Source: Kudoa neothunni (Eukaryota; Animalia; Cnidaria). From it: DNA of 64,000 nucleotides. Positions 9,401-58,200 of the stretch are shown in pieces. Under the pieces are notes generated by a model. The model saw only the letters and a program-made list of their open reading frames with translations, did not search any database and was not told the DNA's origin. A program made the translations under genes and the position numbers. Where the stretch lies: contig OZ199839.1 of assembly GCA_964304625.1 (NCBI GenBank), positions 1,800,093 to 1,864,092 of the forward strand, read 5' to 3'. Positions within the stretch are counted from its first letter, which is position 1. Every line of letters begins with the position of its first letter.

Positions 9401-9982
9401 AAATAACATTGAAATCATTTAATATTAAAACTAGTGTAGAACGGTTACAAATATCTTGGTATCAAGATCTTATTCCATGAAACATCCTAAATTTTTTTAT
9501 TACTTTCTTATGCTGGCAGTTCATTATCCAATAATTATCAAAAAACCTACATAACATCATGTATTACAAATATACAAAAAATAGAGGTTAAATTTTTAAT
9601 ATTCGTACGTAACATAAAAATTATAAATAGGTTTATGTATTTTTGATGTAAACATCTCAATTAATTATTCGCGAGTCTTGACACGTGATGTAGTTTTTCC
9701 GCGCCCAATCAATGAATAATTGCGGTCGTCCATTTTTTATGTATTATATATTAATACTGGTTATAATTTTTTTAAACTGATTATATACGTTAATAATAAC
9801 TTATAATTTGTTATTTTAAAAGTTCCATTCTATTTAATGGGATTATCATGATGATAAACATATGTTTTATGTTTTTATATAAAATTTCGTAGGAACAAAA
9901 TCAATAAATAAGTTTGCGAAATGTGATTATAAACTGAGAAGCGGTTATGGAGATATCGATTACCGTGCGAATAGCCACTGCC
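6419..9982 (-). mobile_element. MULE (FAR1/ZSWIM3-like, SWIM finger) transposon with 283-bp TIRs, degenerate
   Basis: TIRs begin GGCAGTGGCTATTC, as in the sister element at 52367. FAR1-like 'GCPFYI...HNH', 'KDATYKL', 'ITDKD', 'LCKFHVLQ', 'NTTNNRLES', SWIM 'CCSCKF', C-terminal 'GR-RG..T.IGLPKKK'. Confidence 0.85.
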
Positions 9983-31700: not shown

Positions 31701-34700
31701 GAGACGAAACACAGTAATGACGCTTATGACAAACATGTAGACACTACTATCTCAACTATTGCTAACATGAAGATTTCTCAAGCTAATTATGATCAATTTT
31801 CTCAAAAACTCTCTCTAATTGCTAGTGAAGCTAAAAAAATGATGAAAGAATATGAAGAGGCTTTACATGCTGAATATATTAAGATAAATAAAGTGGATTT
31901 TGGTGATTCTGAAAACCAAGAGTATTTTGATTCGTTTGAGATAAATTATAATTTGGTCCAAAACATGGTATTGACTAAAGTGGATACTTTTGATACCACT
32001 CAATATATTAAGTTAGCTAAAGAAATTAAAACTGAAACTGAGAAGCTGAATGGGCTTCAGCCAAAATATAACAAATTAAATGTGGATTCAATTGTTACTA
32101 AATTCCATCACAGTATGAAAAGCTCCATTGATCGTCTAAGACCTTATGAAACCCAGATTTTGGGAGATGTACAACAGGCTACCAATGTATATGAAAAGTT
32201 GGTAGAGCTTAAAACTAATTTCGAACAAGCTAAACAATCATTCGAATTATCATTCACCAAAATTAGAGATTTAAAGGATCAATACCATTCTATGGTTCAA
32301 CAACTTTTAAGTTTATCCAAAGATAAAACTTTAAATGAAACCAAACTAAAAGAAGAGATGCAAACATTACAAAGTAAAAAAACAAATTTTTTGAATGATG
32401 TTAAGCAGAAGACGTTGGCCTCAAAAAAATTTTTTAAAGATCTACAACAGAATAAAGCGGAATATGGTCGATTATTATCATCCTTAACGTCTACAATTAG
32501 TTCTATGAAATCATTAAAAGATCAGTCCAACCCAGAGTTGACTAGTTTGAAGTCTCTAAATGTGAAATTAACAACAAAACTTGTGTCAGCTTCGAAAGCA
32601 GTTAATACCAAGGAACATATTGTCGCAACTTTGACACCAGTCATTGAAAAACTCAATTCTTTCATTACGAATTATCCTAATACCTTAAATTCACAACAAG
32701 CCGCATCATTCGGAACTATTAATACCGTCATTGGATTATTTACTAATGTAAAATCCTCCATATCAAACGATAAAGTCAAGTTTGAGGAAAAAATATCTGA
32801 ATTATCTAGATTTTATGAGATAAATCGTGAAAGATTTCATAGTGATATGCGAGGAATAATAACGTACCAAAGTCAACGACTATTTACCAGTGAACAATAT
32901 TGCGATACATATATTGAGTTTTTGAACGAACTTAAAACTCGAATTTCAGAAAACTCAGCACAGTTGACAAGTGACCTTAATAGTGAATCAGTAGAAATAT
33001 CATCTGACTTAACTAAAGCTTTATCTAATCTGAATTGTTGTGTAATGGTACTAAATGGCCAAGAATGTGTTAATGCTATTGAAAAAGATTTTGATCAATG
33101 TATGAAATACATTGAAATGTTTGATACTGATCGTAAGGTAAAAGCAGTTAACGATTTTAACAATAAAATGACACGATCATTGGATGCAATCAGAGTTCAA
33201 AATGAAAACGAACAGCTTGGATTGGATAGATTGAAATCATTGCAATCAGATTCGAAAATAATAGACGAAAAAACAAATTTACTGGAAGAGTTGTTTAAAG
33301 AAGAATATAAGAGATCAAAAATATCGGAAGTAAGACGACAATTGTCTTTTATCAATGCAGATGTTGAAGACAATGATGATTCTGTAACCTCAAAGATAAA
33401 TTCGATTTCACAAGACAGAAACATAATTTATAACAAACTAAATGAATACGAAAAGATAATTGGTATTCATAAAAGCAAATACACAGATGCGAAAAACAAA
33501 TTCTCTGAGTCCTCATCCAAAGCTGATAGCTTAACAAAATCAATCAAAAATGAGGCTAAGAACACTTTTGTCATTCAACAGTTAAACCAAAACCCTTCTG
33601 TTGCCGCCCAAATTACTGGTTATGGTAATGAGTTAAATGTTGATGCAGAATTTGTATCAAAATCGGAAAATAAAATCAGTAGCTTCAAAGATGAAAATCA
33701 AAGTCTCACCACTATGTCTGAATCCAATTTTAACACGTACCAAAAGCTTAAGAAGGACATAGAAATTCTTCAAAGTCAACTTGACAGTCTAGAAAGCAAT
33801 AGAGAATTGATTGATAAACAAGCTGTTCTTCAAAAAACAGAGGAAATTAGAAACAGCCTCATTGAAAAATCCGCCGAAATTAAATCAATCAGAAATAATA
33901 TTTCCGGTGATGAACAAAAAATAGAAGAATTTAATAACAAAGTTAACGATAACTATGATGATTCTTTCTCCCGTACACGTGAATGGAACAATAAAATTGT
34001 TCAAAATATTTCACAAACAAAATTAATGTTAAAAGAACTTAAATCAATTAAGAGATTTTCCATGTCAATAAACAAAGGTTTAGAATCTCTAACATCAATG
34101 AAAACAAATCTTGAAAGTTACCAAAGTAATTTGGATACCAAAAAAGATCAATTTACTCGTGATATCAAGCATAAAAAAAATAAGTTAACTGAAACCATTA
34201 ATATTAAAAAGGGTTCTTTGAATTCCAATAAAGAGAATGAACATAGAAACATTGCTAGATATATGGAATCATATCAAAAATTAAAGAAACAAGCAAATAA
34301 CGAGGATACCGATGTTTCAACTGATATTGAATTAAAATATAATAAATACGTAGATTTAAAAAATAAAATACAAAATGACTACGAAAATAAAAAAGAATCT
34401 ATTGATACTTATGAGAAAAATGGTTTAACTCATTATCAAACCCAAGAGAGTTCTTTAACTGAAAAATATTCTAATCTTGAGACAACTTCAGAGAGTTTCA
34501 TTAGAGAAATTGATAACCTAATTTCAGAAATTACTCAACTCCGCCTGGAAAACCAATCAGATTTGATCCAAAACAAATATAATAACTTAAAGTTTTTAAT
34601 TGATAATTTCTTTTCCGTAAATCGGGAGGTTTCATTTACTGTTGATGAATACGACGGGGAAATTGAGACAAATATTGAAAATTTTTCGATTGGAACTGAA

Positions 34701-35039
34701 GGTATTGATCAAGAAATTGAAACAAATGTTAAAACCATGAAAGAAATACTGGAAAATGCTTCTAAACAACAACATGAACAAACGGAAAATAAAGATGACT
34801 CTGAGGAGCCTGCTTTGAGTGATAATGTGGATCCACTTGAATCTGATAGTGGATCCGAAAGACAAATGGCTACAGGAAACAATAAAAGCATCGAAGTCAA
34901 AGACTACTTCCGAATGATTTTGATAATCGCTTCGATATTAACTATCTCACTGGTTATCATGGGTGCCATTATTTATCATAAAAATATAAAGAAGAAAGAA
35001 ATATACAAAAAATGCGAAAATATTTACATCAAAGCATAG
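28784..35039 (+). CDS. Giant type-I membrane protein: signal peptide, ~2,000-aa mostly coiled-coil ectodomain, single TM, short tail; exons 28784-28817 and 28867-35039
   Basis: Uninterrupted 6.2-kb ORF. A 49-nt GT..AG intron (28818-28866) joins ATG 28784 in frame to give MISKIPLFLSLAIFAISQNSC. C-terminal hydrophobic 'MILIIASILTISLVIMGAIIY' is followed by the basic 'HKNIKKK'. Confidence 0.88.
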
Positions 35040-36996: not shown

Positions 36997-37731
36997 TATA
37001 TCACATTGAGAATGAAAAAAACAAAAATAAGATTACTCGTTTTCGACTAAAAAACACCCCAGCTTTGGGCATTTGCTGAAATAATATTCTACAACGTTAA
37101 AAATTATAATTTACATTAGAATATCAAATATTAACAAAATTTCATCGAATTTTTGTGAAAATTCTGTGAATAATTTAGATTATTGGCACATAAACTCTGT
37201 CCCGAGATGAAATCTAATTAAGTTCAAATTCATAAAACACCCTCAAATGGACGATAAAATATTTGATTGTTAATCTTCCAAAAGTTTATTTAGATATTGA
37301 ATACATCGAGATCATTTAACGAGGCCACTAATAAAAATTGTGTTTTTTGTTAAATACGAACCGTTACAAATGAGAGAGAAACAACAAAATTTCTAAAATA
37401 TGCAAGACGACCTATTTGCTATTAGTCGCTTCAGAGTTTGGGATGGAAAAATTGTTTTTAGGCAGAAGTTCATATTTCAATTTTAATTATTCTTTCACGT
37501 GTGTGTGGAGTGAAGAAAATTATACAGCAAGTGGACGAATTTATTCTTCAAAAACTCGTATGATCATGTTAACTCGGTGTTTTTAAGTTTGGTTAAAATA
37601 ATATTACCTGCGTACATTTTATACACGATGCGAAAAAAAAGATTTACGCTGTGTAAAAATTGAACATTTTCGAAAAGTTTCTGAGTAAAATAAATAAAAG
37701 TAAATGTAATTTGACACCGAGGTAGACATCT

Positions 37732-40400
37732 TGTGACGTCAGCATACATAACGAGTAGTTTCGGATACCCTTCCTATTATCGTCCATTAATACTGACTCT
37801 TTGATCGTGTCACAATGGTGTTAAAGGTAGGACCCACAACATCTATGACGATAAATTTCAATGAGAACGTCGAACAACAACTAGAAGAGCTCCAGTTAAA
37901 GCAGTTGCAAAGGTTGGGATGAGAAACAGCTTTACGCTTAAACACTCCTGGCAATTCCTCGTCATATGCGTGAATATTTCAAACCAAACCAACTAAATGA
38001 AAGCGGGGTTCTAACATCGACTCAGATGGTTACCCTTCTTAACGAGAACATATTGCAATATTCCAGAAGTCTCTAGACTAAGGAGTCGTTTTCCATGATT
38101 TCTCGCAAGCCTCTATAAAACTGAGGGAAACAGTCCAAGATTACTATCAAAGGATCTTTGTAACGCAGTAAGGAACACAATGGCAAAACAACCGATAACC
38201 GCGCGTATACTAATACAAAGGTAATTAGGGTAAAACTCAGTAGGTATACGCATTGTCACGTCACAATCTTCTCATTTTTTAAAATGTCACGACCACAGGT
38301 AACGGCAGAGGATGTTTAATTCTTCCTAAAACAAAAAATTATGGACACTGCCTGAACATTTGTAAGTACACGTAAATTATTTAAGAATGTGAATATGTTC
38401 CAAATCATGGAGAAACCCCAATTACTGTTGGATTATTGGCACTCTGGCGTAAAAGCGACAAATAGTAGCAATGATGTGTCTCCTATATTATCGAATGAGA
38501 GACGAAAAGATAAAAAACCAAAAAGTAAGGCTGGATATCGCCCCAAACGAGGATCATGTTCTAAATGCGGCGGAGAAAATCATTTGGCTAACGAATGCTT
38601 GGTAAAAGCTGTATGTCGAAAATGTGGGAAATCTGGTCATATTAATAGAATTTGTTACAAATATAACTACGTTAACGACATATCATTTAATCTGAATGAT
38701 GATTATTCTGTATTTTTTGGAGGCACGCGTGAGTGTGACATGGGCGTACTGTTACGGCATTGCTAGATACGGGGACTTGCTGTACGTTTGTTAGAGACGA
38801 CTTAGTTGGCCCCAAGTACGTTAAACCCTCGTCGAAATGTTTTATGGCAGCGAATGGATTTAAACTCAAAAGCACCGGATTGGCCAATATGTACATAAAA
38901 ACGAAAGTTGGAGAATCAAAGTCAAAACACATTTAACGGAACAAATTGCATACAACGCAATCATTTGTAGAGACGTCCTCGTGAAACACATTGACTTGGT
39001 TTGGAAAGGCAGTATGGAAAAGTCACTGAACACCATAAACTGTCACCAAAATAATTTCGATAACCTTGTAAAACAATTCGAACCTTTATTTGCCACATCT
39101 GCAGATTTGCGAATCGCAAAAGATTTTGAGTATCAGATGTCTACAACAACGCAAACCCAATTACGTCACGGGCATAAGCAGTCTCCATTCATTTGCAAGA
39201 AACAGCTACAAAACAATTAGAAGAGCAATTAAAAGCTGGCATAATATGACCGTCAACTAGTCCCTGTAGATCTTCTGTTACTTTTGCTAAAAAGAAGGAT
39301 GGGTCTTTTCGATTTTGTATTGACTTCAGCAAAATCAATGATATCACTATCAAGGATGAATATCCGCTTCCTCTAATTGATGAGTGACTTAATAAATTGA
39401 GTGGTGCAAAAATATTTTCAACACTGGATTCACAATGCGGTTACTGGCAGATTCCAGTGTCAGAAGATACACCCAAAACTGCGTTTACGTTTGGACATGG
39501 ACTATACGAATACAATTGTATACCATTTGGGTTAGCAAACACACCAGCAACTTTCCAAAGAATGATGGATAATACACTGGGGGATTTGGAATACGTTCTG
39601 ATGTACATGGACGATATAATTGTCTTTTCATCTGATTACGACAAACACATCAAACACCTTCGAAATGTCTTCTCGCGCCCCCAACGACAAAATCTGAGGA
39701 TAAATAGAAAAAAGTGTGTATTTTTTCGTGACAAAATCCAATATCTAGGATTTATAGTATCACACGTGGGCATTACTCCGAATCCAGAAAAAGTGGGGCC
39801 AGTAACCAATTGGAAAATACCTACATCCGTCCGGGAGTTAAGATCGTTTCTGGGCACATGCAACTTCCTCCACAGATTCACAAATCATATGACAGAGATA
39901 GCATCACCTCTGTACAAATTGACAACAAGTGAAAAGTCGTTTGTGTGGTCACCTGAAGCCCAGCGTAGTTCCAACACACCAAAAGAAAAAATCAAACAAA
40001 ATCCTACACTTTGTTTTCCTGACGTCGAACTTCCTTTTACCATGGAATGTGACGCTTCCAACAGAGGAGTTGGAGTTGTTTTATACCAAGTAAAGAATGG
40101 GGACAGAAACATTATTGCATATACCAGCAAAAAATTAAATCATGCTGAACTTAATTATTGCACAATGGACAAATAATTTTTGGTTATTATCGTTGACGTT
40201 AGGAAATTTCGCCGTTATCTATTAGGGAAAACGTTCACTATACTGACAGACCATAACCCCTTAACCAACATAAGGAGGATGAAAGATGCTAGAGGAAGAA
40301 GTAGATGGCTCATGGAAATGGAGGAACACGACTCTCATTCGGTACATCGTGGGAAAGTTAAACATAGTTGTTGATTCGCTGTCCAGGAGTGTTGTTTGTA
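37732..40400 (+). mobile_element. Ty3/Gypsy LTR retrotransposon, decayed and 3'-truncated
   Basis: 83-bp TGTGAC...GTCACA LTR (37732-37814) followed by a TGGTGT PBS-like site; two CCHC knuckles; protease LLDTG; RT 'YMDDII'; RNase H 'CDASNRGVG','TDHNPL'; no integrase or 3' LTR seen. Confidence 0.85.
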
Positions 40401-40402
40401 TA

Positions 40403-41360
40403 TAGGGTTTTTCGAGCTTTGTCGCCAATTTGTCAAGCAATAAGGTCAGTTTATCAAGCTTTAACGACGCTGTTAAATTATATTACTAAATTAACCATAT
40501 ATAAGTAACTTTCGTTCTATATTCATGCAAAAAATAAGTAATTCCAAATATAAGAATAATTATTTTATATTTTTTTATTCGAGAATTATTTCTCTGTTTA
40601 AGCAGAGAGAGACATAGCGGAACATTTTTCGAAAATACCCCTTGCAGTCCTCTGGTGTAACTGAATTGAATCCGTCGTTAATAAGGTTCATCAAGTCGTC
40701 CTCATTCCTTGTCTGACCTCGTATGACGATATGTTTCCGCCTGCTAAAGGTGTTTTCGATCGAGTTGAGGAATGGGAAGTATGGAGGCAGGTAAAGTATG
40801 TTTAACCCCATCGACTGAATGTAGTCTTTCACACCGTCATAATGGCGTATTCGCGCATTATCTAAAATAAAGTAACGATTTTCAATTTGCATAGAATTTC
40901 ATGTTAATGTGAGTTCATGTAGATAGTTCTTGAAATCTTCTCCGTTAACTGGTTGGTTATTTATCTTGTGGAAGACCATATCGTATTTTTTCATTTAGGC
41001 TATTACGGAGATGTTTCTACTCCTAACGCTGTCAACAGGAACATAAGCCGACGTCCTAATCAATGACCGACCTAGCTTTGTCCTACTGGAAACATTAAAC
41101 CGCACCTCATAGATAAAAATGAAGTTTTTGTCCTCAGTTTCAAGGAGATTAGAATTAAAACTTTGTACGTGCGCTAAATGCTGTTCCAATGTATTAGCAC
41201 ATTTCCTTCTCTCAGGGACCAAAGTAACGGATTTAAATGAGTAATGAAACTCGTTCAAACATCGATTAATTGTGCTGATACTTAATGAGACGTCACATTC
41301 GTCGATCAACTTAAGGCGAACAGCTTTGAGTGTAATACAATAAGAAACCAATTCCACGTA
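40403..41360 (-). mobile_element. IS630/Tc1-like transposon, 5'-truncated, related to 17298-18750
   Basis: TA|TAGGGTTT terminus; 'LDNARIRH','LPPYFPFLNSIENTF','VPERRKC'. Confidence 0.8.
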
Positions 41361-41839
41361 ATCCCCTCAGACCAAAAAAAAAGTGCGTCAGCCCGGTCAC
41401 GTCCAATTTTACGCACTTGCGTGCGCGATTATTTCTGAGCAAATAGCATTTGATAGTGTTTAAATCGCGTTTATAAAGGCTAGTTAACTATATATTAATT
41501 TTTAAACGATAACTAAAACTCGAGATCGTGTTAACAGCACGAAAATATTTTTTTCCAATCTACGAAATACTCTTCTTGTTGTTATCGGTAGAATAAAGCA
41601 GCAGTTTCGTCTACATTGTAAATAAAATTTTCAGAGTATCTTTCAAAAATGTTCTAATTTGATTGGTCTATTATGATGTAGTTTCTGGTGTAGTATCAAC
41701 ATATTAGCTAAAAAAATTTGGTTTTTTAATGTTGAACCTTTTTTTAAAACAACGAAACCCTCGACGAATTGCACACGAAGGTAAGTAAACCTTTTTCTTT
41801 GGCTAATTGATTTCTCTTGATGATTATCGTGACGACGCT

Positions 41840-42250
41840 TACTACAATCTTTCTGCTTCGTGTCCACCCCATCCAATCATACACATCTTCATTAACAGAA
41901 TTAAATTGTCCTGCATGTAAATAATTTCTATTTTTGGAACGACTGCACAGCACAATCTCTGGTTCACAGTGCGAATTCGCGGGCAATTTTTACAGAAGAT
42001 AAACATCATTCTCAGGACCGAACGCATCCACACCATCCCCTAATATTTATCTTCTAATAGACTTGATTTACTCGCGAATCTGACTCATCGAGCTGGCGAA
42101 CATACGCTGAAACCTTGACTTAAACCCGACCCTCTTAAGCATCGTCACTTTGGATATAAACTTTCCCGCCTTCAACCGCTTTGTCAATCACCGCCTTGCG
42201 GCATAGAGGACAAAACTTTAACTTAAGTACATTAAATTCTTTTCTTTAAA
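41840..42250 (-). pseudogene. Highly decayed Tc1/Tc3-like transposase fragment
   Basis: 'MVW(D)AFG' across a frameshift and 'IIYMQDN' resemble Tc1 'MVWG.F' and 'FQQDNA'. Confidence 0.35.
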
Positions 42251-42769
42251 CTTTGATTTGTTTAAAACCAATGTTTAAATTATGTTCTTCAGAACAACTT
42301 ATTGACAAAATTATTTTGCTTTTATACGAAAATAAATATTACAGAAGTTAATTGATCTTTTCAATTTACGCATTGGAAAGTAAAATTAGTCCCCTTTAAT
42401 TAAATCTTATTTACATCAATATTTACTATAATTGTCGATTTACTGCTCTCAATAAATATATCAGAGAACTAAATTCAGTTTTTAATTGGATCAATAAGGA
42501 ATAGACAATTTCTATTTAATGGTGCGCCTGAGATACGTAACCATTTTACTCAAATAATATGTTTATTGTTTTTGTCAAAGGAATGTAATCAAATGATTGA
42601 ACCTGAATTATCGAAAACGTTTGAATAAGATAACAATTATAAATTTTTTAGTGAAATTTGAAAAGTCTAAGCATCCAATTGCAATAAATTTATACACCAA
42701 GCATTTAACGAAAATAATCAAAGGAGAAAAATTCTAATTCGTTTAAGTTGTTTTAATATTTCTAAGAAT

Positions 42770-43790
42770 TCATCCTCCCTCTCAAACAAATATTTCTTCC
42801 TGAAAATATATTCGTCAAAGTAACTAAAATATATTGGATAATTCTTTAAACAAAATTATTTTACCTCTGATAAAGATATTCTCTTGTCCCATTTTTGAGT
42901 AATGAAATCTTTAACTGATGCCAGTAGCACTCAATAGTATTGGTATGAGAGCCATCAGGTGCCACGTAAGTTTCACTATGATTCACTATCCTATGTTCGT
43001 ACCCAAGAGACGGTAATATCTTGTAGACTTTAGCAGCGTCAGTTATGATAGTTGTCCCTAATATATAAGATTTAATATTGAATTATATCCCCACTAACCT
43101 GGCAAAATATATTTTTTGATTAATGGAACCAAAACTTTGATTTCTTTGTCGAACGGGCACAAAAAACATATTGTCGGAATCTCTTTCAATTCCTCCAAAA
43201 ACCCATTGACCCATTACTCCACGGCCTCTGTTATATTTGCGCTTTCCAATTTGCTCTCGTCAATTCCTACAATTTTCCCGTGGCCTAAACTTCATCTTAT
43301 ATACAAAGTATAGTTAGATATTACCGCTAATTGGTTTGGAATCCATAAGCAAAATTTCGGGGCAAATAAAACGAAATTCCTTTTTCCAATCAATAATCGT
43401 ATGATCAGAATATATTTCCAGGTCATTTTTTTATGAAATTATAAGGGCATTTATTCACCCAATAATAAATGAGAAAGAGTATTTTCTGTGTATAAATATA
43501 ATAATGTAACCATAATGACTTACTTTTATCTTCAAATTAGAAAAGGAGAAAATTGAATGGTTTCTTATGGAGATGGCTTTACGGCAGTATTTGTTTATGC
43601 ATCGCCATATACATTTGTCATTCTTAAATGATGCATCTTTTTGTAGGCTTACCTTGCCGATTTTTCATGTGTCACATGCACCTTCAAACTTATTAAGAAA
43701 TCCTTTTTCGAATACAAAATCCATCATTTTCTGTTTATTCGAGCATAATTTCGAAATTCTATTAGTGTTAAACTTCTTAACCATCTCGAA
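42770..43790 (-). pseudogene. Merlin transposase remnant
   Basis: Minus strand, across frameshifts: 'GKIVGIDESK-GKRKYNRGR..GQWVFGGIER', 'GTTIITDAAKVY', 'VNHSETYVAPDGSHTNTIE'. Confidence 0.75.
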
Positions 43791-43877
43791 TTTGTAACCA
43801 CGTGAAAACCGATGTAGCGGATGACGATCAAACCCGTGATCCTCAAGCTAAAAGTGGCGGGGCCTTACCACTTAGAC

Positions 43878-45296
43878 CAGGGTTTCCCTATAGGGGGTGC
43901 ATGAAGCAATCATTGGGGGTGCGGGATTACCCTATGATGAATTAAGAATTTAAGCCTGACTATATGAATGAAAGAAAAATTTGAGTCCAGAAATTCAGTT
44001 TGGAGCTACCGTATTTAATTAAATATCATATAACGGGATATTTTGTTAATGAAATAATCTAATAATAACAGATTTTATATAATGCACTTTCTATTAAAAT
44101 CATTCTATCTTTTAAATAATATAAATTTATAATTCAAAAATCGCTATTTATTTACCAAAAATTTATTAATAATTAATAAAATACTGTCTACTTGTATCTT
44201 GGGAGTATGAAGACGTTAACAGATTTTAACTTAATGCTGTGTATTTAATGAGCGAATTAACATCGCCCACGCGTCATCATGGTTGCTTCCCAAAAGGTTA
44301 GAAAATGGAATGAGGATTATACTCGGTATGGCTTCACAAGAGTTACCATTGTAGGCAAGATATCATGAATAATACCATGTATCACATAAATAAATTGAGA
44401 TTATCCTTTGATGGTTATTATTCTCTCGACCAGTTACAAGATTCTGATATTTGGATTGTTGATCCATTTTCATTTAATGTTAATACTATGAATAATGATG
44501 ATAATGATACTGAGTAATTAATAGATTTTCAAGAAAACTACACAATGAAGTTGAGTTACAATGAAAATCCACTTGAGAAACTTTTGGTGCAATACCCAAT
44601 GCAGTTACTCGTCCCTTGCAAAATGAGCATTGAAAATTCTTATCCCATTTGCAACGACCTGGTTGTGCGAGTCAGGATTTTCACCTTTGTTGTGTGTAAA
44701 AAATAAATATAGAAATTTACTGAATCCAGAAAATGATTTACGCATCGCATTGACAAATGTGGAACCGCGATTTGAATTATTAGTGGAAGAACGCCAAGGG
44801 AGGGAAAGCCGATAAATCAAAATTAAACTCAATAGTTTTTAAATGTGTTATCATTTTTTTGAATCTTGGTCTCTTATATGCTTATTAAAGTGACTGAATT
44901 TGATATCAAACTTATATATATATATCAACTAGATATCTGTCCATACGCGATATTTTATTAATTGTTTTATAAAATAAGTTTTTGTTAATAATGTTATAAA
45001 ATAAATATGCTATAAGTTTTGACTTTCTTTTTAAAATGTATGATTATCATAGGAATGCTTTTTTTAATTTTATTCATAAAGTACTAGTGATTAATCGACT
45101 AAACTCACGAAAATTATTTTAATATATTGCTTTAAAAATTAAAAAATTAAAATGCATTATTTGGAATATAAACTTAGAGTAAAAAAAGGAAACACAAATT
45201 TACCATTAATATTTTTATAAATATTAACATAGTGGTGCGAGAGTAAACTTGATAATCATTTGGGGGTGCGGGGAAAAAAATAAAAGGGAAACGCTG
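43878..45296 (+). mobile_element. Internally deleted hAT/Buster element
   Basis: TIR CAG(G/C)GTTTCCCT at both ends with GGGGTGC subterminal motifs; hATC fragment 'PFATTWLCESGFS...KNKYRNLL'. Flanks ACTTAGAC / CTCTAGGG both have a central TA but do not match. Confidence 0.75.
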
Positions 45297-45442
45297 CTCT
45301 AGGGTATTAATTTGATTTCAATAATATAGTGAGTCTCAAGTATGCAGTCACCGTGTGGCCACAAATGTGTACACGAAATGTTTACTTAAGTTCAACCTCA
45401 GTATTGTTCACTGCTATAATATTTATATCTATTTATTTTAAA

Positions 45443-48400
45443 CTAGCCGTAATACCAGGCTGGGCTCGTGGTGTTGGGAATATCTAATTCAGCAAAAAAA
45501 ATTGAAATAAACATGTTTTAAATTATATTTTTTAATATAATAAAAATTTTATTATGTTAATAGCACAAATATCTGTCGAACATTTACTGCGAGAAATAAA
45601 CAGCCATAAATGAAACATAACAAAATTTTACTTAATAATGTATGTAGTTATTATATTTAAGAAGAAATAGAAAAAACCCAATATAAATAAATTTAAAAAA
45701 AATTAATAATAACAAATGAACTTCATTTCGTTTAAATCTCATCATCATTATTTGATTATTACATGGTTTTAAGAAACGAAGAAAATCCAAAAGAAATCGA
45801 CGTAAACGTGAGGCATTACAACGGACTACAACTATACGGTCGACGCATAAAGGGATATAAAATCCGAAATTGAATTCTCATTTGAATTCTTTGATAGGCC
45901 TGTTTAGTTGAATCGTACCTATAACAATGTGGTAGATTAAATTTTTAACATGAAATCTTATAAACACTCACCAAAGAAATTTCGTCACATGCAAAATTTT
46001 GAAAAATGCCGCCAACAAAATTCAAAATACTTCCACAAGAATATTCAAAGATATAAAAACACAATACAAAGCCATTTTTAAAACTAACGCGTTCATTTAA
46101 TCAGGATTTGTGGTTACTTTAAGATTTAGGGTCAAATTGGCCATGGAATTGGATCGTAGTAGCTTTAAGACGATGGCGAACCGACATTTTACAAAATGCA
46201 TTTCTTGGAAGATTTACATATGCAAGCTTAGAATTGATCAGCAACACGTTTCCAGAATAGGTACGTATTTTTCTAACACCCAAGATATGTTTAACAGGCA
46301 AAATAGCTACATCCACAGTTTTAAGTATGTCTTAGAAACATACCCGTCCTCTGATTTTAATATAATTATAAACACTGACAAGCGTCAACAGGGAGAAAAT
46401 GGGAGAAAATACAACTCCCCAACTTGCAATGAGGTGGACATCGCAATGTCGGATGAGCAGCATTGTAGGAGGGATATTGTTTTGAGGAATAAGGATAACA
46501 GACTATAAAGAACAAGCGAAACACACAGATCGTATGATGCATTGCAATATCCACTAACTAATGTCTATGGTCAAGGTGGTTACCATTTTCGTATTCCACA
46601 GATTGACACAAACAAAAGTGTTTCATGTAAGGATATTTATTCTTTTCATTGTATTGTAAGGGAAAATAGTTTTAATATGCTTCATCAGTTTTGGACATTA
46701 ATTATTCCAACAATATGCTGTAGATATGTTTGCGAAGATGGAATCAGAGACACTGTTTTATTAGAGCCAAACAAAATGAACTTCGTGTTGAATCTTACAT
46801 CAATTTCATTGATAGCGTTCGTAGCGACGGCGAAATAAATGGGGGGGGGGGGGGGGGGGGCGGTTGTATATTTTGCCGTCGACTTTTGTAGGTTCACCTC
46901 GCTATATGAACGTGAAGATGCAGGATGCCATGATCTACGTTCGATGTTTTGGAGGACCAGACCCATTTATAACATTCGCATGTAATCCATTTTGAAGAGA
47001 AATTAATGAAGAGTTATTTCCTGGCCAAGCATTTAAAGACATACCAGACATCGTGGCCAGAGTATTCAACTTGAAAAAGTTTTGATGAATTTAATTCATA
47101 AATTGAAGATTAATGATGAGGTCATTGTTATATATATACAATTGAGTGGCGGAAATGTGGGCCGCCACACGCTCATATATTGGTCTGGATGAAACAGGAA
47201 CTGCGTTCCAATGATATCAACCAATTCATATCGAGCGAATTACCAGACCCAGGTGTAGATCCAGTATTGTTCCAGATTGTAAGAACAACCATGGTCCATG
47301 GTCCCTATGCTGCGTTAAATCTAGAAATCCCGTGCATGAATGATCAGAGAAAATGCACCAAAAACTATTCCAAACAGACTCTGATGGGTATCCTGTTTAC
47401 AGAAGAAGACGACCGGAATATGGGGGTTTTCGGGCGTCAATCCATCTGAACAACAGTGGGGAAGTCGTCATAGATAATAGATGGATTATTCCCTATTGTC
47501 CTTTGTTGAAGAAGGTTGTCAATGCCCATATTAATGTAGAGCATTGCCATTCAGTTAATTCCATTAAATACATATGCAAGTATGTAAACAAAGTTTCTGA
47601 TTCCGCCATGTTTGTTGTTAATCAAAGAGATCGTTTGGATAAAGTTTCAAATTACCAGGCTGGTCGCTACATAACCAGTAGCGAAGGATTTTGGAGATTC
47701 TTCGGATTCAATATTCATAGTCATTTTCCAACCATAGAGCGTTTAAGCGTCCATTTGGAGAACGGTCAACGGATTTATTTCACCGACGAAACTTTGTTGA
47801 ATCGGTTACAAAATCCAAGGGGCACGACATTAAACGCTTTTTTCAAGCTTTGCCGGAATGACGAATTCGCTCAAAGTCTTCTCTACCATCAGGTCCCATA
47901 TTATTACAGATAGAACGATAATAGTTGGCGTCGGAGAAAAAGAGGGTGCCCAGTTGAAGGCCATCTAGGCATAAGATTCGACTCTACAATAGGAAGAGTT
48001 TACAGTGTGAATCCTGCACATCGAGAATGTTTTATTTGAGAATGTTGCTCCATTGTGTAAGGGGACCTAAAAGTTTTGACGATATTAAGAAGGTTGACAG
48101 TCAGATATACCTAACATACCTGAAGCGTGCATTAAAAGTGGTTTGGTAGAGGGTGGCAACCACTGGGAATGTACATTAAGGGAGGCTGCTCTTACAGACA
48201 GTCCACGTCAATTACGAAGATTATTCGCACTGTTGATCAGAAATTGCGAAATGCGTCAGCCTCACAAACTGTGGTTACTTTTTAGGGAAGATATGTCGGA
48301 AGATTACCGGTATCAACTGCAATAAACCAGTTTAATGTCAAACGTGGTTTTCAATTCTAACATTTATAACATGCCCCTACTTGACATAGAGGACACTTTA

Positions 48401-51313
48401 ATTCAAATGGGTGGAAGAATGTTAAATTCATACGGATATCCTCCTTTGGACAAAATTTGGCGCCTTTCTTCCAAATGAAGTCCAGAGATAATTTGCCTAC
48501 AACATTGAAGAATTAACCGAGTTTGTAGAAATAAACAAGCCGAAACTGACGCCTGACCAAAGAATTGCATTCGGAACAGTGTTGGGAAGCATTTTTAACA
48601 ATATAGGTAATTGTAACGTTTTTTTTCTTGATGCACCGGGTGGTACAGTTAAGACATTTGTGACAAATCTTTTATTGGCCGAATTAAGAAAAGGTTCTAA
48701 AATTGTACTCGCTGTTGCATCCTAGGACATTGTAGCCACATTATTACCAAGGGGTTGGACCGCCCATAGTACATTTAAGTTGCCAATTGCCATTTAAGGT
48801 GATGGAACCGACGTATATGCAATCAGCAAAGGACAGGTTTGTCCCGATTGTTGACCAGATGCACGACCATCATATGGGATGAGTACACAATGACAAACAT
48901 AGTGGTTTTTGAAGCTGTAGATAGAACGATAAAGGATTTAACAGACAAAAACATTCCATTTGGTCGAATCGCAATGGTTTTGATAGGCGATTTTCGTCAA
49001 ACTCTACCCGTAATGCCCAGATATGCAAGATATGACCAAATTCAATATTTTCTAAAGTTCTCTTCCTTATGGGCGAATGTTAAAACCTTCCATCTTACCA
49101 CCATGAGAGTGTAACTCAGCAACGATGAAGGAACCAATCAATTCGCTTCAGAAATACTATGGATAGGTGATAATCAACTTACCATTAGGCCCCATAAATA
49201 TATTCCTCTATGTTCCGTGGCAAATTTGGTTTCTTTCATGGATGAATTGATAGACCATGTTTTTCCAGAAATACAAAAAAACTTTTACGACTCAAATTGG
49301 CTGTCAGAACGAATTATCTTAATCCCCACAAACCAATCCGTAAACAAAATCAATGATATATTGATCCATCTTATTCCAGGTGACTCTACAGAGTATGAAT
49401 CATATGGCACCGTTGTGGACAAAAATCAATGTGTCAATTTCCCTGTTGAATCCCTCAACAGTCTAGATTTTAGAGCTATCGAGGGTTCTTTCGCACAAGA
49501 TTCTCCTAAAGGTAGGCACTCCAATTATACTGCTAAGAAATTTGGATTCACCAAGGTTGTGTAACGGCACTCGATTGATGGTAAAATCGTTAATGTCTTA
49601 TCTTATTGAGGCCACTATTGTTACAGGTTGTGCCAGAGGGGAAGGTGTAAATATTCTGATAATTCCGATTATTCCTTCAGACACTATCTTTAATTTTAGA
49701 AGACTGTTATTTCTCACCAAACCATGCTTTGCGATGCCTATAAATAAGGCCCACGGGCAAACTTTTAAAGTTGCTAGTATAAATTTGGAGGAACCGTGTT
49801 TTTCTCATGGGCAGTTGTATGTCGTCCTCTCCAGGGTAGTTCCAAACACAATTTATACGCTTTTTCTCCAAATGGTCTGACCAAAAATATAGTTTATAAG
49901 GAGTTACTACAGTAACTGACTATGCTATTATTTTCTTATCTTTATGGATCTTACCCGTCAATTTAAGTTCAGTGTTTATATAAATTTCATTCAAATTTAT
50001 TTATATGAAACAATGTCTCTTTGATTCTATTTTTGGGAATATCTCTATAATGTTATGTGGAACATTATTCCAATTCTTTGCAGCATGTTCAAACATTATT
50101 CCATTACCATTAGGCGATAAGAGTAGAAACTTTACATGAAACACTTTTGTTTGTCAATTTTTGGATTGCGAAACTGATAAAAATATTCATCCCCGACATT
50201 TATTTTTGGATGTTGCAGTAGGTTATGCGATTTATGTGCTTCGATTACTGTTTGAGGTGTGTTGTGTTTATTTTACAAATAATGTCTAATACTTCATGCT
50301 GCTGATCTAACTTTATGGGGGACAATTGATCGTAACTTGGAGTGTTAAATCAACCTCTATTTTCTTCTTAAGAATGTCGTCAGTATCTTTTATTGTAATA
50401 GGATCAGAAGTTGGGTGGATTTCCAAAACAAACATAAAATGGTAGGTATAGTTTTTTGGCTGTTAAGCATATCTTGGGTGTTAGAAAAATACGTACCTGT
50501 TCTGGAAACGTGTTGCTGATCAATTCTAAGCTTGCATATGTAAATCTTCCAAGAAATGCATTTTGTAAAATGTCGGTTCGCCATCGTCTTAAAGCTACTA
50601 CGATCCAATTCCATGGCCAATTTGACCCTAAATCTTAAAGTAACCACAAATCCTGATTAAATGAACGCGTTAGTTTTAAAAATGGCTTTGTATTGTGTTT
50701 TTATATCTTTGAATATTCTTGTGGAAGTATTTTGAATTTTGTTGGCGGCATTTTTCAAAATTTTGCATGTGACGAAATTTCTTTGGTGAGTGTTTATAAG
50801 ATTTCATGTTAAAAATTTAATCTACCACATTGTTATAGGTACGATTCAACTAAACAGGCCTATCAAAGAATTCAAATGAGAATTCAATTTCGGATTTTAT
50901 ATCCCTTTATGCGTCGACCGTATAGTTGTAGTCCGTTGTAATGCCTCACGTTTACGTCGATTTCTTTTGGATTTTCTTCGTTTCTTAAAACCATGTAATA
51001 ATCAAATAATGATGATGAGATTTAAACGAAATGAAGTTCATTTGTTATTATTAATTTTTTTTAAATTTATTTATATTGGGTTTTTTCTATTTCTTCTTAA
51101 ATATAATAACTACATACATTATTAAGTAAAATTTTGTTATGTTTCATTTATGGCTGTTTATTTCTCGCAGTAAATGTTCGACAGATATTTGTGCTATTAA
51201 CATAATAAAATTTTTATTATATTAAAAAATATAATTTAAAACATGTTTATTTCAATTTTTTTGCTGAATTAGATATTCCCAACACCACGAGCCCAGCCTG
51301 GTATTACTCCTAG
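45443..51313 (+). mobile_element. Helitron with decayed RepHel (~45900-49915) and long terminal inverted arms
   Basis: 'ETHRSYDALQYPL', HUH 'IEWRKCGPPHAHIL', 'KYICKYVNK', Pif1 'DAPGGTVKT','IWDEYTM','GDFRQTLPV','LCNGTRL','FSHGQLYV', end 'KNIVYKELLQ*'; bounded by A|CTAG ... CTAG|T. Confidence 0.88.
45449..51307. repeat. Inverted repeat: near-identical arms 45449-~46296 / ~50461-51307, continuing inward as diverged arms ~46300-46790 / ~49980-50460
   Basis: ORFs 46110(+) and 50647(-) share their first ~60 aa. One 1-nt homopolymer indel seen in the outer arm. Inner arms still align by eye, e.g. ACAAACAAAAGTGTTTCATGTAA in both. Confidence 0.92.
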
Positions 51314-52244
51314 TACATTAATAAAGATAAAAAGTCGCTCTTTTGTTTAATCCAACTTGGTTAGCTGGTTAAGCTTTTCTTGTAGCTATAACTCAGCATT
51401 AAAATGATTTAAAATTAAAATCACAACGAAAAAAGTCAGCCGATGTGTCATCTCGAAAACCATATCTCGTCATTTAGGAAAAAACTAAAACTTTTTAGGA
51501 ACCGAGTAGTGTTGCGAAACTCTGTACATCATCTCGAATTTTAGTGTCATAGTGAAGAATAAAGACACAAACACTTACAATTTTATCGACAAAAATGACA
51601 CTTTTATTCACTGTTTTAACTCATTTTTCAGAGACATTGATTAGCCAAGTCATGATTGTTAATAAAACTTTTTGCTCATACATCCACCGTTACAGTAGCG
51701 GGTTTGCCAACAGACAAGCTCGAACGTATCGATTTCCAATCATCTGAAGAAATGCGTGTCAATAACCGTGAAAATGGATTTCTGGATTTTTACAAATCAT
51801 TAGCTAACACGTTTCAAAGTGGTTAGGAAAATACACTTCTTCCATAAGGACGTTTAGCTGCACGTATCGTTGTGAACAAGCATCTTACGGAGGAAACTTA
51901 ACAATATTGATATACATAGTCAACTAACACAGATGACAATTAGAAGCAATTTTGCGGTCGTTGACTTCAAATGATGATCACGACATTGCTAAACTTGGCC
52001 ATGAATTGCAATAGCACCCATCGCATTAATGCATTAATTTTCAGAATTTTTACTCAATTTGAAACATTTACTAAATTTATTATATTATGAATTATTTTTC
52101 AGGTTTTCTTTGGCGTTTCTGAAGTCGAGTATCTATCCAAAATGTGATCTATAACCTGAGCTTTAACTTATCTGGCCAGTAACAATTTCCGGAGATATAA
52201 ATTTGGCCGTCGGGGAAAAAAGTTTGTGTGCCATTGATTTAAAA

Positions 52245-55200
52245 CAGGGGTCGGCAACCCGAATGGGTTGGCGGGCCATAATATATATAAATCATTTAGC
52301 TGTATTGAATTTTTTACAATGCAATTGGATACTGGCTAAAGACATTCGCATTGCGATATTTAAAATGGAAGTGGCTATTCTTACGACGACGATTATCTTT
52401 TTTCTTACTAAAGATATTTTGAATCTGAATTTAAAAACATGTTGTTACATTTTTTTCCTACAAAAATTTAAGTTTTTATAAATTATTATTGCAATAAAAT
52501 TAATACATACATTTTGACCTTATTTCGCCATTACAAGTACTAAAAGTGATTAAAACCAGATCTTCATTAACATTTACGACATTTAAAGCATTTTTGAATC
52601 GAAAAATCACGAAAATTGTGCTAATATAACATCATTTGCAATGGAGACCATTAGCCCACGTGTCAATGTTACGGTTTGGTACGGATTAATTGTTTGAAAT
52701 GGTATCATTTTATAAGATATTTACAGAAAAATAAAACTAATATTAATCAAATTTAGAAATTTTTTCAAGCCAAATAGACGGAACTCAAACAATCATACGT
52801 CATCACTTCATAATTCAAGTTATTTAACATTAAAATATAAATCGAAATACATAATTAGCAACCAATATTTGGGAAATGTCATAATTAATTAACTTTTATT
52901 ATCAACTATCTATTGAAATTTTATTTTTGTTTTTTCTTCGGAAGTCCAATAGTAGTTAATCTGCTACCCCTGGGCCTTCCGACAGACTTGACTTTGGATG
53001 GAATGGGTATATCTAAAAATTTTTTATAATTAATAAAAAATTAGTTACTTTTATATGTATCATTAGTTTTTTCCTGATTCATACTTTTACTAGCAAAGCT
53101 TTCAGCTAAATACATTACCATCAGTTAGTACTATGGTTAGTTTACCGTATTTTTCATCCGTATATTCATCATCTTAGTTTAAATTATATTAATAAAATAT
53201 TTTCATTTACTAAATACTTGTGTAAGACAATTCACTCTCAGGATTGGAGGATATGATTTCAATGAAAGCGTTATCTTCTCTCAAATTTATTTTCACTAAT
53301 ATACTTTACACATTTGCAACAAATAGTAAATAACTTAGTTCATTTATAGTAGACATCATTTTCGTATCATGATTTTTAATGACACATTCAAGTCTTCTAA
53401 AACTCAATGGAAGCTTGAAAATAATCTCCGCAAAACTCTGCAGATGTAGTCGCCAACTTTTTTGTAAGCACTGAAGACAGTCTTAATCTTTGAGAAAAGG
53501 TTTGGATAGTGTCTTTAGGTTTGATTTTTACAACTCCCTCATCATGAAAATCTTTACAATTGTTAACATTTAGAACATTAAGAAATTATTCGCATACTCC
53601 CTAGTCCAACGAGAATGGCACAATGATTCATCAAACAAGTTGATTAAGTTGAGTAAACGTTTTTGTAGAATATGACGACAAGGAAGCTTGAATGCTTTAT
53701 GCATTGAACAATTACAAGAGTTATAACTGGAATTTTCTTCTAAAGTGGCGTCCTTTATTTTTGATAATTCTTCCTGGATTATACTTGAAGAATAGGGCGT
53801 GAGATAATTATGATATTTTATGAAAGTCTCATTATCGTTGGAAGAATCGTATGGTTTTATTAGTTCCATAGCAATGGTGCTTTGCCGCTCAATCCCTTGC
53901 GATTTCAAAAATCTGAAGAAATTGTCGAAAAAATCACTCAAAGTTGAAAACTTTTTCACTACAGTTTTTAGTTTTGCATTAATGGATTCAATTCTGTTAT
54001 TCGTTGTATTATTATAGTAATGCTCAGCCATACTTAATCCAATTATCCATTCCTGGTAAATGGGTAGCCAATTCTTTTTGAAATAATCATTAAGTTCCTC
54101 AACTCCGAGGTCAAAAAGTTCACAACATAGGCGGTCAAAATTGTCCATGTTCTAGACATAAGTCATTTTTTCTAATATTTGAAGAATAAGTGTTTTTGTT
54201 TCTGTTGTTATACCATACTTTCCGACTTTTATTTCCCGCTGGAACGCTTGTAATACATGGAATTTACATAGTATCAACTTTGTAGAAGGAAATACGAAAC
54301 TTAAACATTTTCGTAACAAATGGTCTTTGTCAGTTATTATTGACATCGTTTTGGATTGTAACCACGGTGCAACATCTAACAATTCGTTCAGAAACCATGT
54401 TATGGCTTCTGCTGTCCCCTCATATAAAATACAGGCACAAGTGATATGGGTTAAACCAAAAGAGTCTTGAGATGCAGTTAAATAAAGAGGAGCTCTACAA
54501 ATACAATCGTCATTTGTTATAAAATAGCGTTTCGTACCTTGAATCCAACAGCTTTAAGTGGCATCTATGAATAATAGCTCAGGAAAACATTCAAGAACAT
54601 GGAGCATTTCGTTATCCACGAAGAAAATTCCATTGACAGAATTTTCATTAGCAAGAATTTTAACTCAGCAATTATAATCATTTTTCAATATCGTAATAAC
54701 GGAATCATTATTTTTCGGTTCGACGATAGAAACAGTCCGTACATTATGGATAGATTTTAATGTAATTTCCTCGCCGGTTTCTTCGCTTAACTTAAACTGA
54801 ATTAACCTTTTATTTGCTCCTAATGATATTAACTCCGATATCATTGGATCATCAAGGTTAATTCTTCTTTGTGGAGGAAGGTTTTCGAACATTCTTTGAT
54901 CGCAGGAATGGTTATGGATTAAATTTAGCGATTTCACCTCCAAAAAGTTACCGTCCACAGTGTTCCGGAGCGAGATACTAAATGGGCATTTCTTCTTAAA
55001 TGATAATTTGTTTCTATCTCCACTGCTTTTGCGTTTGTAAGGAACACCAAAGAAACACACGTAATTAATGTCATAATAAACCAACTGAAAATTTATGGAT
55101 CTGTTTACTCTTCGTTGTGCATTTGAAATTTTTCTCGAATGTCTAATTTTTAAATTGTAAAAATGTTTTTCTTCGTATTCTTTCACTTTAATTTGTAACT

Positions 55201-58200
55201 TTTCATATGAATCAAATTTCATTCCAATAAAGAAGTCAGCAGACTGTTCACAATCCATGATTTCCATAATACTGCGCAACATAACGTTTTTATTTTAACA
55301 TGTTTGGGGATATTAACAGACTCGGAAACAAATTGTTAATATATGTAATGAATTACTAGTAAATATTATATTTTTTGAGATAATTAATATTATCAGGTTT
55401 TATCATTTTGTTAAAATTATGCCGTGTAATTATGTGGTGTAGGAAATAATCATTTTATCTAATTTTTAAGACAATAATACTAATAAAATTTATTTAATGT
55501 AATTACTATGAAATACAATTAACCTCAATATCTTTCCAGATACTTAACCTGAAAAATATATATCATTTTGGACGAAATAATAGGCAGTTATTATGTCGCT
55601 ATACTCACCAAGATACATGAAGTACGTTTTAAACAAATAGAACAAATTAGATTATTAATTTTAAAAATAAGCTTTTAAAATTGCATTTTGGATCTAAATG
55701 TAATTAAAATATGATGTAGTTCGTGACGCAATAATCGAATGAGGTCTTAACATTGACACGTGGGCCAATGGCCTCCATTGCAAATGAAGTTACATTAGCA
55801 CAATTTTCATGATTTTTCGATTCAAAAATGCTTTAAATGTCGTAAATGTTAATGAAAATCTGGTTTTAATCATTTTTAGTACTTGTAATGGCGAAATAAG
55901 GTCAAAATGTATGTATTAATTTTATTGCAATAATAATTTATAAAAACTTAAATTTTTGTAGGAAAAAAATGTAACAACATGTTTTTAAATTTAGATTTAA
56001 AATATCTTTAGTAAGAAAAAAGATAATCGTCGTCGTAAGAATAGCCAGTGCCATTTAAAATTATATCGTTTCAGTGCGACGCGAGAAAAACAAACTAATT
56101 TTCTAAATTTATTCGTAAAATTGATATATAATAATTAATGAGAAATTTGTTTTCTTCGCTACTTCAGAGATAGAAATATCCAGCTTCGTTGTGGAGAGCA
56201 ACAAGATGTTATCGAGATGGTCATCACGTAACCTACTCCGCAACGTACTTTTGGTATATTTTAATTTCGAGTTTTCCAATAAATTTTTGATTTTCCAGTC
56301 GGCAATAGACAGTTTCTGTAAAAGTTTATAGTAGACACTCCCAAAAATTTCGACTCCAGATCATTATCTGATTGCAGGTCAATTATTTCTAATTGATACC
56401 TTTCATCTATTTCTTCTACGTCGATTCCATATGGGATACTGAAAAGTTCAAAATTATGTTTGCAATTTCGAAAGTCGTGAAATCGAGAAGAAAATTCATT
56501 CCTTAAACCAGTAACATCGGCTGAAAACAAATCATCTTGTATATCGTTTTTATGATTTTGTAAGTTAGGAAAATGAGAACAATTACCCCTTGGAAGCTGT
56601 TTTTCCAAAGTTGAAGTTTTCTTTCAATGGAGGTGACTTGATAAAACATGTCGACACAAGTTTGTTTTTTCCATGGAGCTCTAGATTTAAGTTATTAACG
56701 TGATTGGAAATATCAGTCAAAAATGCCAATTTAGCAAGCCACTGTGGATCTCGAAAACAAGAGTTGTCTTGATTTTTAGCTGCTAGAAAATCGGAAATCT
56801 CATTTCTTAAAACATACACTCTGTAACATGTTTCCGCAACTCGGCCATCTAATATTAGAAAAGTATGTCATATCACCGTATTCAGTTTCCAAGTCGTTCA
56901 AAAATTCTTTAAATTGACGATGATACAGGTCTTTGGATAAAATAAAATTTACAGATTCTATAACAGACGTCATAACTTTTTCAAAAGGTAATGACTTGGC
57001 GCATAGTGTGTCTTGGTGAAGAATACAATATAGTTTAATAAGACCTCTATTATTACCTACATAATTATCCAGCAAAACAACAAAACCATTTTTTTCATCT
57101 ACCATTTCTGGTGCTCCATCCGTTGTAACCCCAATTAATTTTGACGTGTTAAGGTTAATTTCATGATATAATGGAATATATTTTTTCCTGTTGTAATGCT
57201 TTTCATTGGAATTAGTTTCGAAAATTCTTCAACAATTTCCAATTGTGATGTTACACCCCTCATAAAAACTGCAAGTTATGCGGTATCCGTCATACCGGTA
57301 GTTTCGTCGATGGCAATGAAAAAATATTCAAGGCGTTCGAAAGCATTTATTAGGTTAGTTCTTACAGTTCCTGCTATATCCTCGATACGTCTCGCAACAG
57401 TTCTTCCTGATAGACTGATTTCGGCAAACAATTTTTTTTCTTAGGGCATACTATTTTAGAAACTCTTAATAGCATTGTTTTGAAAAATTCTCCATCAGTA
57501 AAAGGCTTCATCCTTTTCGCAATCAAATTTAATATTTCATAACTAGCCAAAGTAATTTTACAATTATTTTCAACTTGATTTGCAAAAAATGATGATTGTT
57601 TTGTCAAGTTTTTTTCATACGCTCTATTTCTTTTTACCTTTCTAGTTCTGTAAATTCGTCGTAACGATTGTGATGAGTTTCGTAGAGTCTTTTAACATTA
57701 GTAATTTTTTTAACTGCGACACTTCCATGGCAAATTAAACACAGACATCTATCAAAATGCTCAACAAAAAAGTATTTTATTGTCCAATCTTCTTTGAAAG
57801 TTCTTTTTTTAGAAACAACTTTTCTTGTTCTGCCTCCCATTTCAACGAATTTAACACGCGAGGGAGATTAACAAGTTCAAGCACGTGTATCATTAAATTT
57901 TGACATATTCAATAACAGCACAACAATAGGTGTCCATAATATCCTACTTGCTTTTAATTTTTATTTTGTATCTTATCATCGAGTGAATAATCGTTGAAAC
58001 GTCGCTGTTATAAATTTGGAAAATTCATACGCTGCAGCCAAGTACAAATATAGCTAGTACTCGACGTTTTTTACGTAGAAATGACTAATTTTATATAATT
58101 CCTTATTTCAAAGTTGACTTCATTTCTGTTTAACTTAATATTTTCTATGATTAAACGATGAGTCGAAATTGCAAAAATCAATAATTAAATCTTCCCTTCC

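Follow-up and report, generated by a model that had tools for sequence, protein, structure and literature searches.

The Helitron copy found in Kudoa neothunni with CTAG termini facing outward at both ends of long inverted arms is most likely a one-off genomic scar left by known processes, and not a symmetric type of transposon. We consider it reasonably probable that it is a dead single chimera, in which two old neighbouring copies of an HLE1 family, here called A and B, were fused by a deletion and the arms were then homogenised by gene conversion. On the sequence comparisons presented here, the most likely source of the left arm is a second copy that was fused in by deletion. The element spans 45443-51313, and all position numbers are those of the window, that is, the whole stretch of 64,000 nt that was analysed. 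The K. neothunni assembly comprises 40.2 Mb in three chromosomes, with a scaffold N50 of 12.0 Mb, and was obtained with hifiasm-meta from HiFi reads at about 7-fold k-mer coverage (PMC12239612). In the literature searched, we found no report of double-CTAG Helitrons or of Kudoa palindromes, which is a weak negative.

Both termini of the element read outward ...GGTATTAC-nn-CTAG, followed by T, with GG as the variable pair on the left (45443) and TC on the right (51313). Most 3′ ends of the family read GGCTAG followed by T, the TC of the right end being private to it, and the exact terminal motif of this copy occurs in the genome only at its own two ends. The initial annotation had described double outward CTAG ends and a two-tier identity profile, and both are present in the assembly. 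Its long inverted arms are also there, although each measures ~1.32 kb and not the ~1.35 kb given. The outer tract (45449-46289 against 50468-51307), described as ~850 bp of essentially identical sequence, covers 841 alignment columns with 2 differences, namely an indel in an A-run at 45494 and a substitution at 46258. Next to it, the 22-nt inner edge of the left arm (46290-46311) has 4 differences from the right arm, and the inner arms continue to 46761 and 50005, over ~450 nt, at about 65% identity (61 to 69 matches per 100 columns), in agreement with the two-thirds estimated by eye. Since the edges differ at 6 of 28 positions and the tract at 2 of 841, the step in identity is far beyond chance (Fisher p=2e-8). 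The right arm begins ~90 nt after the RepHel stop codon, somewhat further than the ~70 bp annotated. The RepHel remnant between the arms shows a Rep region and the PIF1 helicase motifs DEYTM, GDFRQ, NKAHGQ, and SHGQLY; its translations were never read through a stop, and the pieces were searched separately. The Rep-region motifs were identified by eye from fragments, and the short pieces gave no Pfam Rep match.

Table 1. Features of the double-ended Helitron copy and its surroundings, in window positions.
Positions	Strand	Feature	Basis
37181..37731	+	Probable left part of the hAT-like host found at 51314..52236; degenerate TIR at 37181 after ATTTAGAT	
37733..40296	+	Fragment of an LTR retroelement inserted in the hAT-like host	
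45297..45442	+	Left flank, inside a TIR element of ~1.8 kb (left part at 40399-41337); last ~340 nt and right TIR missing	
45443..45448	-	3′ terminus of copy B, GG-CTAG (family-consensus form), then T on the minus strand; unconverted outer edge	Family end comparison
45449..46289	-	Left homogenised tract: family 3′ region, arm of copy B; 2 differences from 50468-51307	Arm alignment
46281..46311	+	Fusion patch; diagnostic sites switch from 3′-region type to native type between 46301 and 46310	Consensus comparison
46312..49915	+	RepHel remnant of copy A, N-terminally truncated, with many frameshifts and stops; stop codon 49913-49915	PF05970, E=6.5e-23
50005..50650	-	RepHel N-terminal coding region copied in antisense orientation; ancient and decayed	72% to native consensus
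50446..50467	+	Inner edge of copy A, left unconverted; 4 differences relative to the left arm	Arm alignment
50468..51307	+	Right homogenised tract; 0/19 subfamily minor alleles	Allele comparison
51308..51313	+	3′ terminus of copy A, TC-CTAG, then T	Present with its flank in public contigs
51314..52236	+	Right flank: L048 1501-2404, the 3′ part of an old hAT-like element, with a TIR at its end and then ATTTAAAA	

The rest of the family was searched for in the whole genome (40.26 Mb, in three large contigs and a small one). The outer arm has about 20 long matches there, mostly at 83 to 89% identity, and wherever a copy is long enough to be tested, this sequence proves to be the normal 3′ region and adjoins the end of the helicase. 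In searches with the RepHel core, all other copies begin to match at 46294 or later, which is the edge of the arm. The RepHel N-terminus is held at 16 other loci, from roughly seven to nine independent insertions, and at none of these 16 is there a left CTAG arm upstream of it; what they have in common there is another, native 5′ region, which measures about 1.3 kb in the complete ones. The right arm had been annotated as an inverted copy of the 5′ side of the element, but the polarity is the reverse: the left arm is 3′-end sequence that replaces the native 5′ region, and the right arm is the ordinary 3′ region of the family. For instance, positions 46000-46289 are 96% identical to the consensus of the inverted segment of the family and 69% identical to the native N-terminus consensus.

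The native 5′ region starts as A|TCTAT in two independent insertions (L035/L036 and L027) and with the variant TG in L026, while the start in L022/L023 is ambiguous. At the 3′ end, CTAG followed by T is found in 8 of the other copies shown and is decayed or shifted in the rest, and a CCCG...CGGG motif lies ~12 nt from the 3′ end in the majority of copies; the 3′ ends of these decayed copies did not fold better than shuffled sequences (z 0.25 to -0.48). There are also short non-autonomous derivatives in which the native 5′ end is joined to the 3′ end. As far as these ends and the coding remnants identify it, the family is of the HLE1 type (canonical Helitron) as defined in PMC11417382.

One of the explanations offered in the initial annotation was a lineage of symmetric long-TIR Helitrons, transposed as a unit and with arms homogenised in replication. 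This is highly improbable. What speaks for it is the symmetric look of one copy, with an A on its left and a T on its right, but that arrangement is absent from all the comparable loci, the terminal motif is confined to this copy, and a genome-wide search with the ends returned no further double-CTAG copies, only members with a native 5′ end and no left arm, which refutes the proposal on its author's own terms. Furthermore, the flanks come from different host elements, and the terminal branch of the copy in the tree is about 0.07, like those of other old copies. The copy has two RTS and a broken RepHel, and lacks both an LTS and a single A|T target site. Given that the LTS is essential for the transposition of Helraiser (PMC4778049), such a copy, with right ends on both sides, should be an immobile dead end.

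The inner tier of the arms has a different history from the outer one. An antisense segment of the RepHel N-terminal region is carried by all the copies with an intact 3′ region, and, consensus to consensus, it is 72% identical to the native sequence, with 33% of first, 22% of second, and 30% of third codon positions mismatched; the native frame is open, while the antisense copy is decayed. No closer donor was found among the other Helitron families searched: identity to its own family is 67% per copy and 72% by consensus, and to the related family L040 it is 59%. To judge from these identities, the segment is an ancient capture, either self-derived or sister-derived. The view that simple assembly collapse cannot explain the diverged inner arm holds. 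The alternative proposed alongside it, an old inverted duplication that was recently converted, holds in part: recent conversion fits the outer tract, and the inverted segment is indeed old, but it is a family-wide 3′ trait and not specific to this copy.

The A and the T that border the element had been taken as one A-T insertion site, but they belong to the interiors of two different host elements, and a search for the corresponding empty site, TTTTAA|TACATT, joining the two flanks found none; neither was an empty site recovered for any single copy of the family. Intact relatives of the right-flank element continue leftward with hAT-like transposase sequence. Far to the left, 37456-37731 matches positions 6-293 of L048 in the same strand and order, and about 1.2 kb of the hAT-like host is missing between 37731 and 51314. 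The two halves, collinear across the locus, are probably one copy, based on this collinearity and on the degenerate TIR, with a possible TSD. The LTR-retroelement fragment nested in this host has no second LTR in the window. The missing parts are therefore the end of the TIR element, the second LTR, 1.2 kb of the hAT-like host, and the 5′ end of the Helitron, and one deletion would account for all four losses because the antisense segment of copy B reads as a direct repeat of the N-terminus of copy A. Elsewhere in the window there is a second near-perfect palindrome, in which 4315-6701 pairs with 9700-12086 and the only 2 differences fall within the outer 13 nt. A MULE TIR and a 2.1-kb stretch of another element make up this palindrome, which ends at the terminus of the latter.

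The order of events that we favour starts from a trait that the family already has: shortly before its 3′ end, the RepHel N-terminal region is present as an ancient copy in antisense orientation. From the anatomy of the flanks, we infer that copy A, on the plus strand, and copy B, on the minus strand, were placed head to head within a cluster of nested transposons, and the antisense segment of B would thereby have been a direct repeat of the N-terminus of A. A homeology-guided deletion, through single-strand annealing or ectopic recombination, may then have taken out the body of B, the 5′ end of A, and the intervening DNA, with the crossover at 46281-46311. In the left arm, the diagnostic sites are of the 3′-region type up to 46301 and of the native type from 46310, and between them lies a patch that ranks second in similarity among the 30-nt windows when the two consensuses are compared (26/30); such a patch at the switch point is a prediction of homeology-guided recombination. 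The remaining 3′ regions would have formed an inverted repeat with its halves about 4.1 kb apart and about 87% alike, and recent gene conversion, probably of B into A, would have homogenised 841 nt of it, stopping at mismatch clusters on both edges. Given that the arms differ at 2 of 841 columns while family copies differ from one another by 11 to 17%, the tract was made identical recently relative to the decay of the family.

The direction of the conversion is a more tentative matter. In the inner segment that borders the tract, the right arm carries 6 of 13 subfamily alleles, and inside the tract it has 0 of 19 (p=0.002), which suggests that B overwrote A in the right tract, but the subfamily group was chosen after the fact, and the direction is tentative for that reason. 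At both edges, the left arm agrees with the majority of the family at sites where the right arm is privately changed, with a family-majority or native base at each of the 4 differing sites of the left inner edge (46290-46311), so plain copying of the right arm would not give the left arm. Against deletion followed by conversion, it must be said that 841 nt converted across about 13% divergence is a large event in a genome with MutS-family genes. Loss of mismatch repair was considered as a cause and rejected, as putative MutS-family matches were found at four loci, one of them in a 588-codon open frame. Trees built by segment did not settle the origin of the left arm.

A one-step repair could have produced a similar structure, although we consider it unlikely. 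In such an event, a break or gap to the left of the N-terminus of A would have been filled by copying the right arm of A through a foldback template switch primed at the patch, and synthesis would have been finished on the 3′ terminus of a nearby short copy, with deletion of the intervening DNA and transfer from A to the left. A single event would then cover both the deletion and the 99.8% identity, position 46258 has the native allele, T, the genome does contain short non-autonomous copies that retain no more than the terminal ~70 nt, and a comparable TIR extension is known in Galileo (PMC3573991). However, positions 46290-46306 of the left arm have three 3′-type diagnostic bases and 0 of 4 private changes of A, which would call for several switches, and a one-step repair gives no reason to expect the subfamily signal of the right arm to change at the tract edge. 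A simple inversion leaving a reciprocal product was rejected: the native 5′ matches beside the patch always run into RepHel, and the reciprocal product was not found.

Deletion and conversion also have to be weighed against an assembly artefact, or a mixing of haplotypes at low coverage, in which case the left arm would be absent as assembled or present on one haplotype only. We rate this as slightly less likely than the one-step repair. The assembly was made at about 7-fold k-mer coverage, and residual haplotypes were purged from it (PMC12239612), and the second palindrome in the window also has its mismatches at the edges. We compared four public runs from one sample, which may be the assembly's own source and are available as contigs only, with the library type not on record; the stretch used for contigs and depth left out the right outer arm. 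The right end of the element is supported by these data, since the X1 and X2 contigs run unbroken from 835 to 1021 nt of foreign flank into the arm, in two runs, with the two changed letters and the shorter A-run that identify the right end. In contrast, none of the contig pieces listed bridges 45442/45443 or contains the left form of the patch, all the depth at 45494 corresponds to the right-arm allele, and the depth of the arm is 1.14 to 1.24 times the single-copy level, in an AT-richer stretch, and not 2 times. These observations favour an artefact and count against deletion and conversion.

Nevertheless, HiFi reads should cover 5.9 kb, and a short-read polishing step is not described in PMC12239612. 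The left edges bear consensus bases that are missing from the right arm, and the halves of the host elements are collinear over the locus. Furthermore, contig building loses short, low-depth links beside high-copy repeats, and a further 855 pieces lie outside those listed, so the missing left-junction piece is a caution and not a refutation.

Comparison with known elements places the family close to HLE1 (Helitron1, for example, Helraiser/Helibat1), with which it shares a 5′ TC, a 3′ CTAG followed by T, a sub-terminal palindrome-like motif, a RepHel with a PIF1 helicase, and small non-autonomous derivatives (PMC11417382, PMC4778049). It departs from HLE1 in the ~650-nt antisense RepHel segment of its 3′ region, and the double-ended copy does so in having two RTS ends and no LTS. 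HLE2 elements (Helitron2/Helentron, HLE2-reverse) are also rolling-circle elements with inverted repeats at their ends, but their TIRs are 11 to 18 nt long and they insert at T|T (PMC11417382), while the arms described here are 1.3 kb long, CTAG-ended, and present in one copy only, and the starts of the Kudoa family follow A. A parallel for the process is Galileo/Foldback in Drosophila mojavensis, in which ectopic recombination and conversion extend or exchange the long inverted repeats and chimeric copies arise (PMC3573991). Nonetheless, Galileo transposes by cut-and-paste and its TIRs are functional features of the family, whereas the symmetry of the Kudoa copy would be accidental and non-functional. 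Conversion also keeps inverted arms near-identical in the human Y palindrome P6 and in mammalian X palindromes (PMC3723533, PMC8600007). Those palindromes are large and gene-bearing, in contrast to the Kudoa tract, which has less than 1 kb per arm, lies in dead transposon DNA, and was apparently converted from about 87% identity.

The significance of this copy for transposon biology is small, as it would be a dead one-off chimera, and it serves rather as a warning that long terminal inverted arms on a single Helitron copy define no new class. Its value is that it cleanly marks a recent conversion, over a long tract, between diverged inverted repeats of a myxozoan genome. It is possible, if doubtful, that long conversion tracts routinely overwrite neighbouring inverted repeats in this myxozoan genome, even at about 13% divergence, so that transposon piles and pairs of genes become near-perfect palindromes, and that the antisense segment of this Helitron family makes the family a recurrent source of double-ended foldbacks of this sort. 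The question of interest is whether near-perfect palindromes in the K. neothunni genome are real and frequent. The role of recombination in this species has been stated to be unclear (PMC12239612), and, if the palindromes of the genome are real, the question of that role would become testable.

At least seven transposons are deeply nested within one old hAT-like element in the region of the window that holds the probably chimeric Helitron copy, and two of them are listed in the table. The neighboring MULE-like element has many copies elsewhere in the genome, with TIR pairs spaced about 3.5 kb apart. We also found an intact ORF, surrounded by dead transposons, that encodes a coiled-coil-like product with a hydrophobic stretch at its C-terminal side.

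Features of the window and example loci of further Helitron families
Feature	Position	Description
Second palindrome	4315-12086	arms of 2387 nt each
Intact ORF	28857-35039	2060 codons
Transposon nest	37181-52236	
~600-nt repeat	41333-41938	in nest; at least 25 copies
1.43-kb element	43873-45302	in nest; 91-98% to its other copies
G run, about 21 nt	about 46841-46861	in RepHel remnant
MULE-like element	52358-56061	TIRs 314 nt, 96% alike
Further Helitron families	C3:2555963, C3:5809539, C1:13658455, C2:9493996, plus others	

The second, near-perfect palindrome has the same pattern as the arms of the Helitron copy at 45443-51313. Its arms differ at 2 positions, both confined to the outer 13 nt, and each joins a 284-nt MULE TIR to 2.1 kb from a different element, at whose terminus the arms stop.

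Several further Helitron families are present in the K. neothunni assembly, with Rep-region protein identities of 50-63%, and some have open frames of 250-480 codons. As for the studied family, six loci (L025, L028-L032) repeat a single copy with its flanks near several chromosome ends on C1, C2, and C3 (92-99%), which is a subtelomeric segmental duplication; the CTAG end is gone from these copies. Two 3′ regions of the family on C3, L037:5417-6304 and L038:2965-5091 (at about 10.809-10.817 Mb), lie tail-to-tail, about 4.7 kb apart and 90% alike. They are sisters in the arm tree (support 100/99), and the pair may stem from a local duplication or conversion event of older date.
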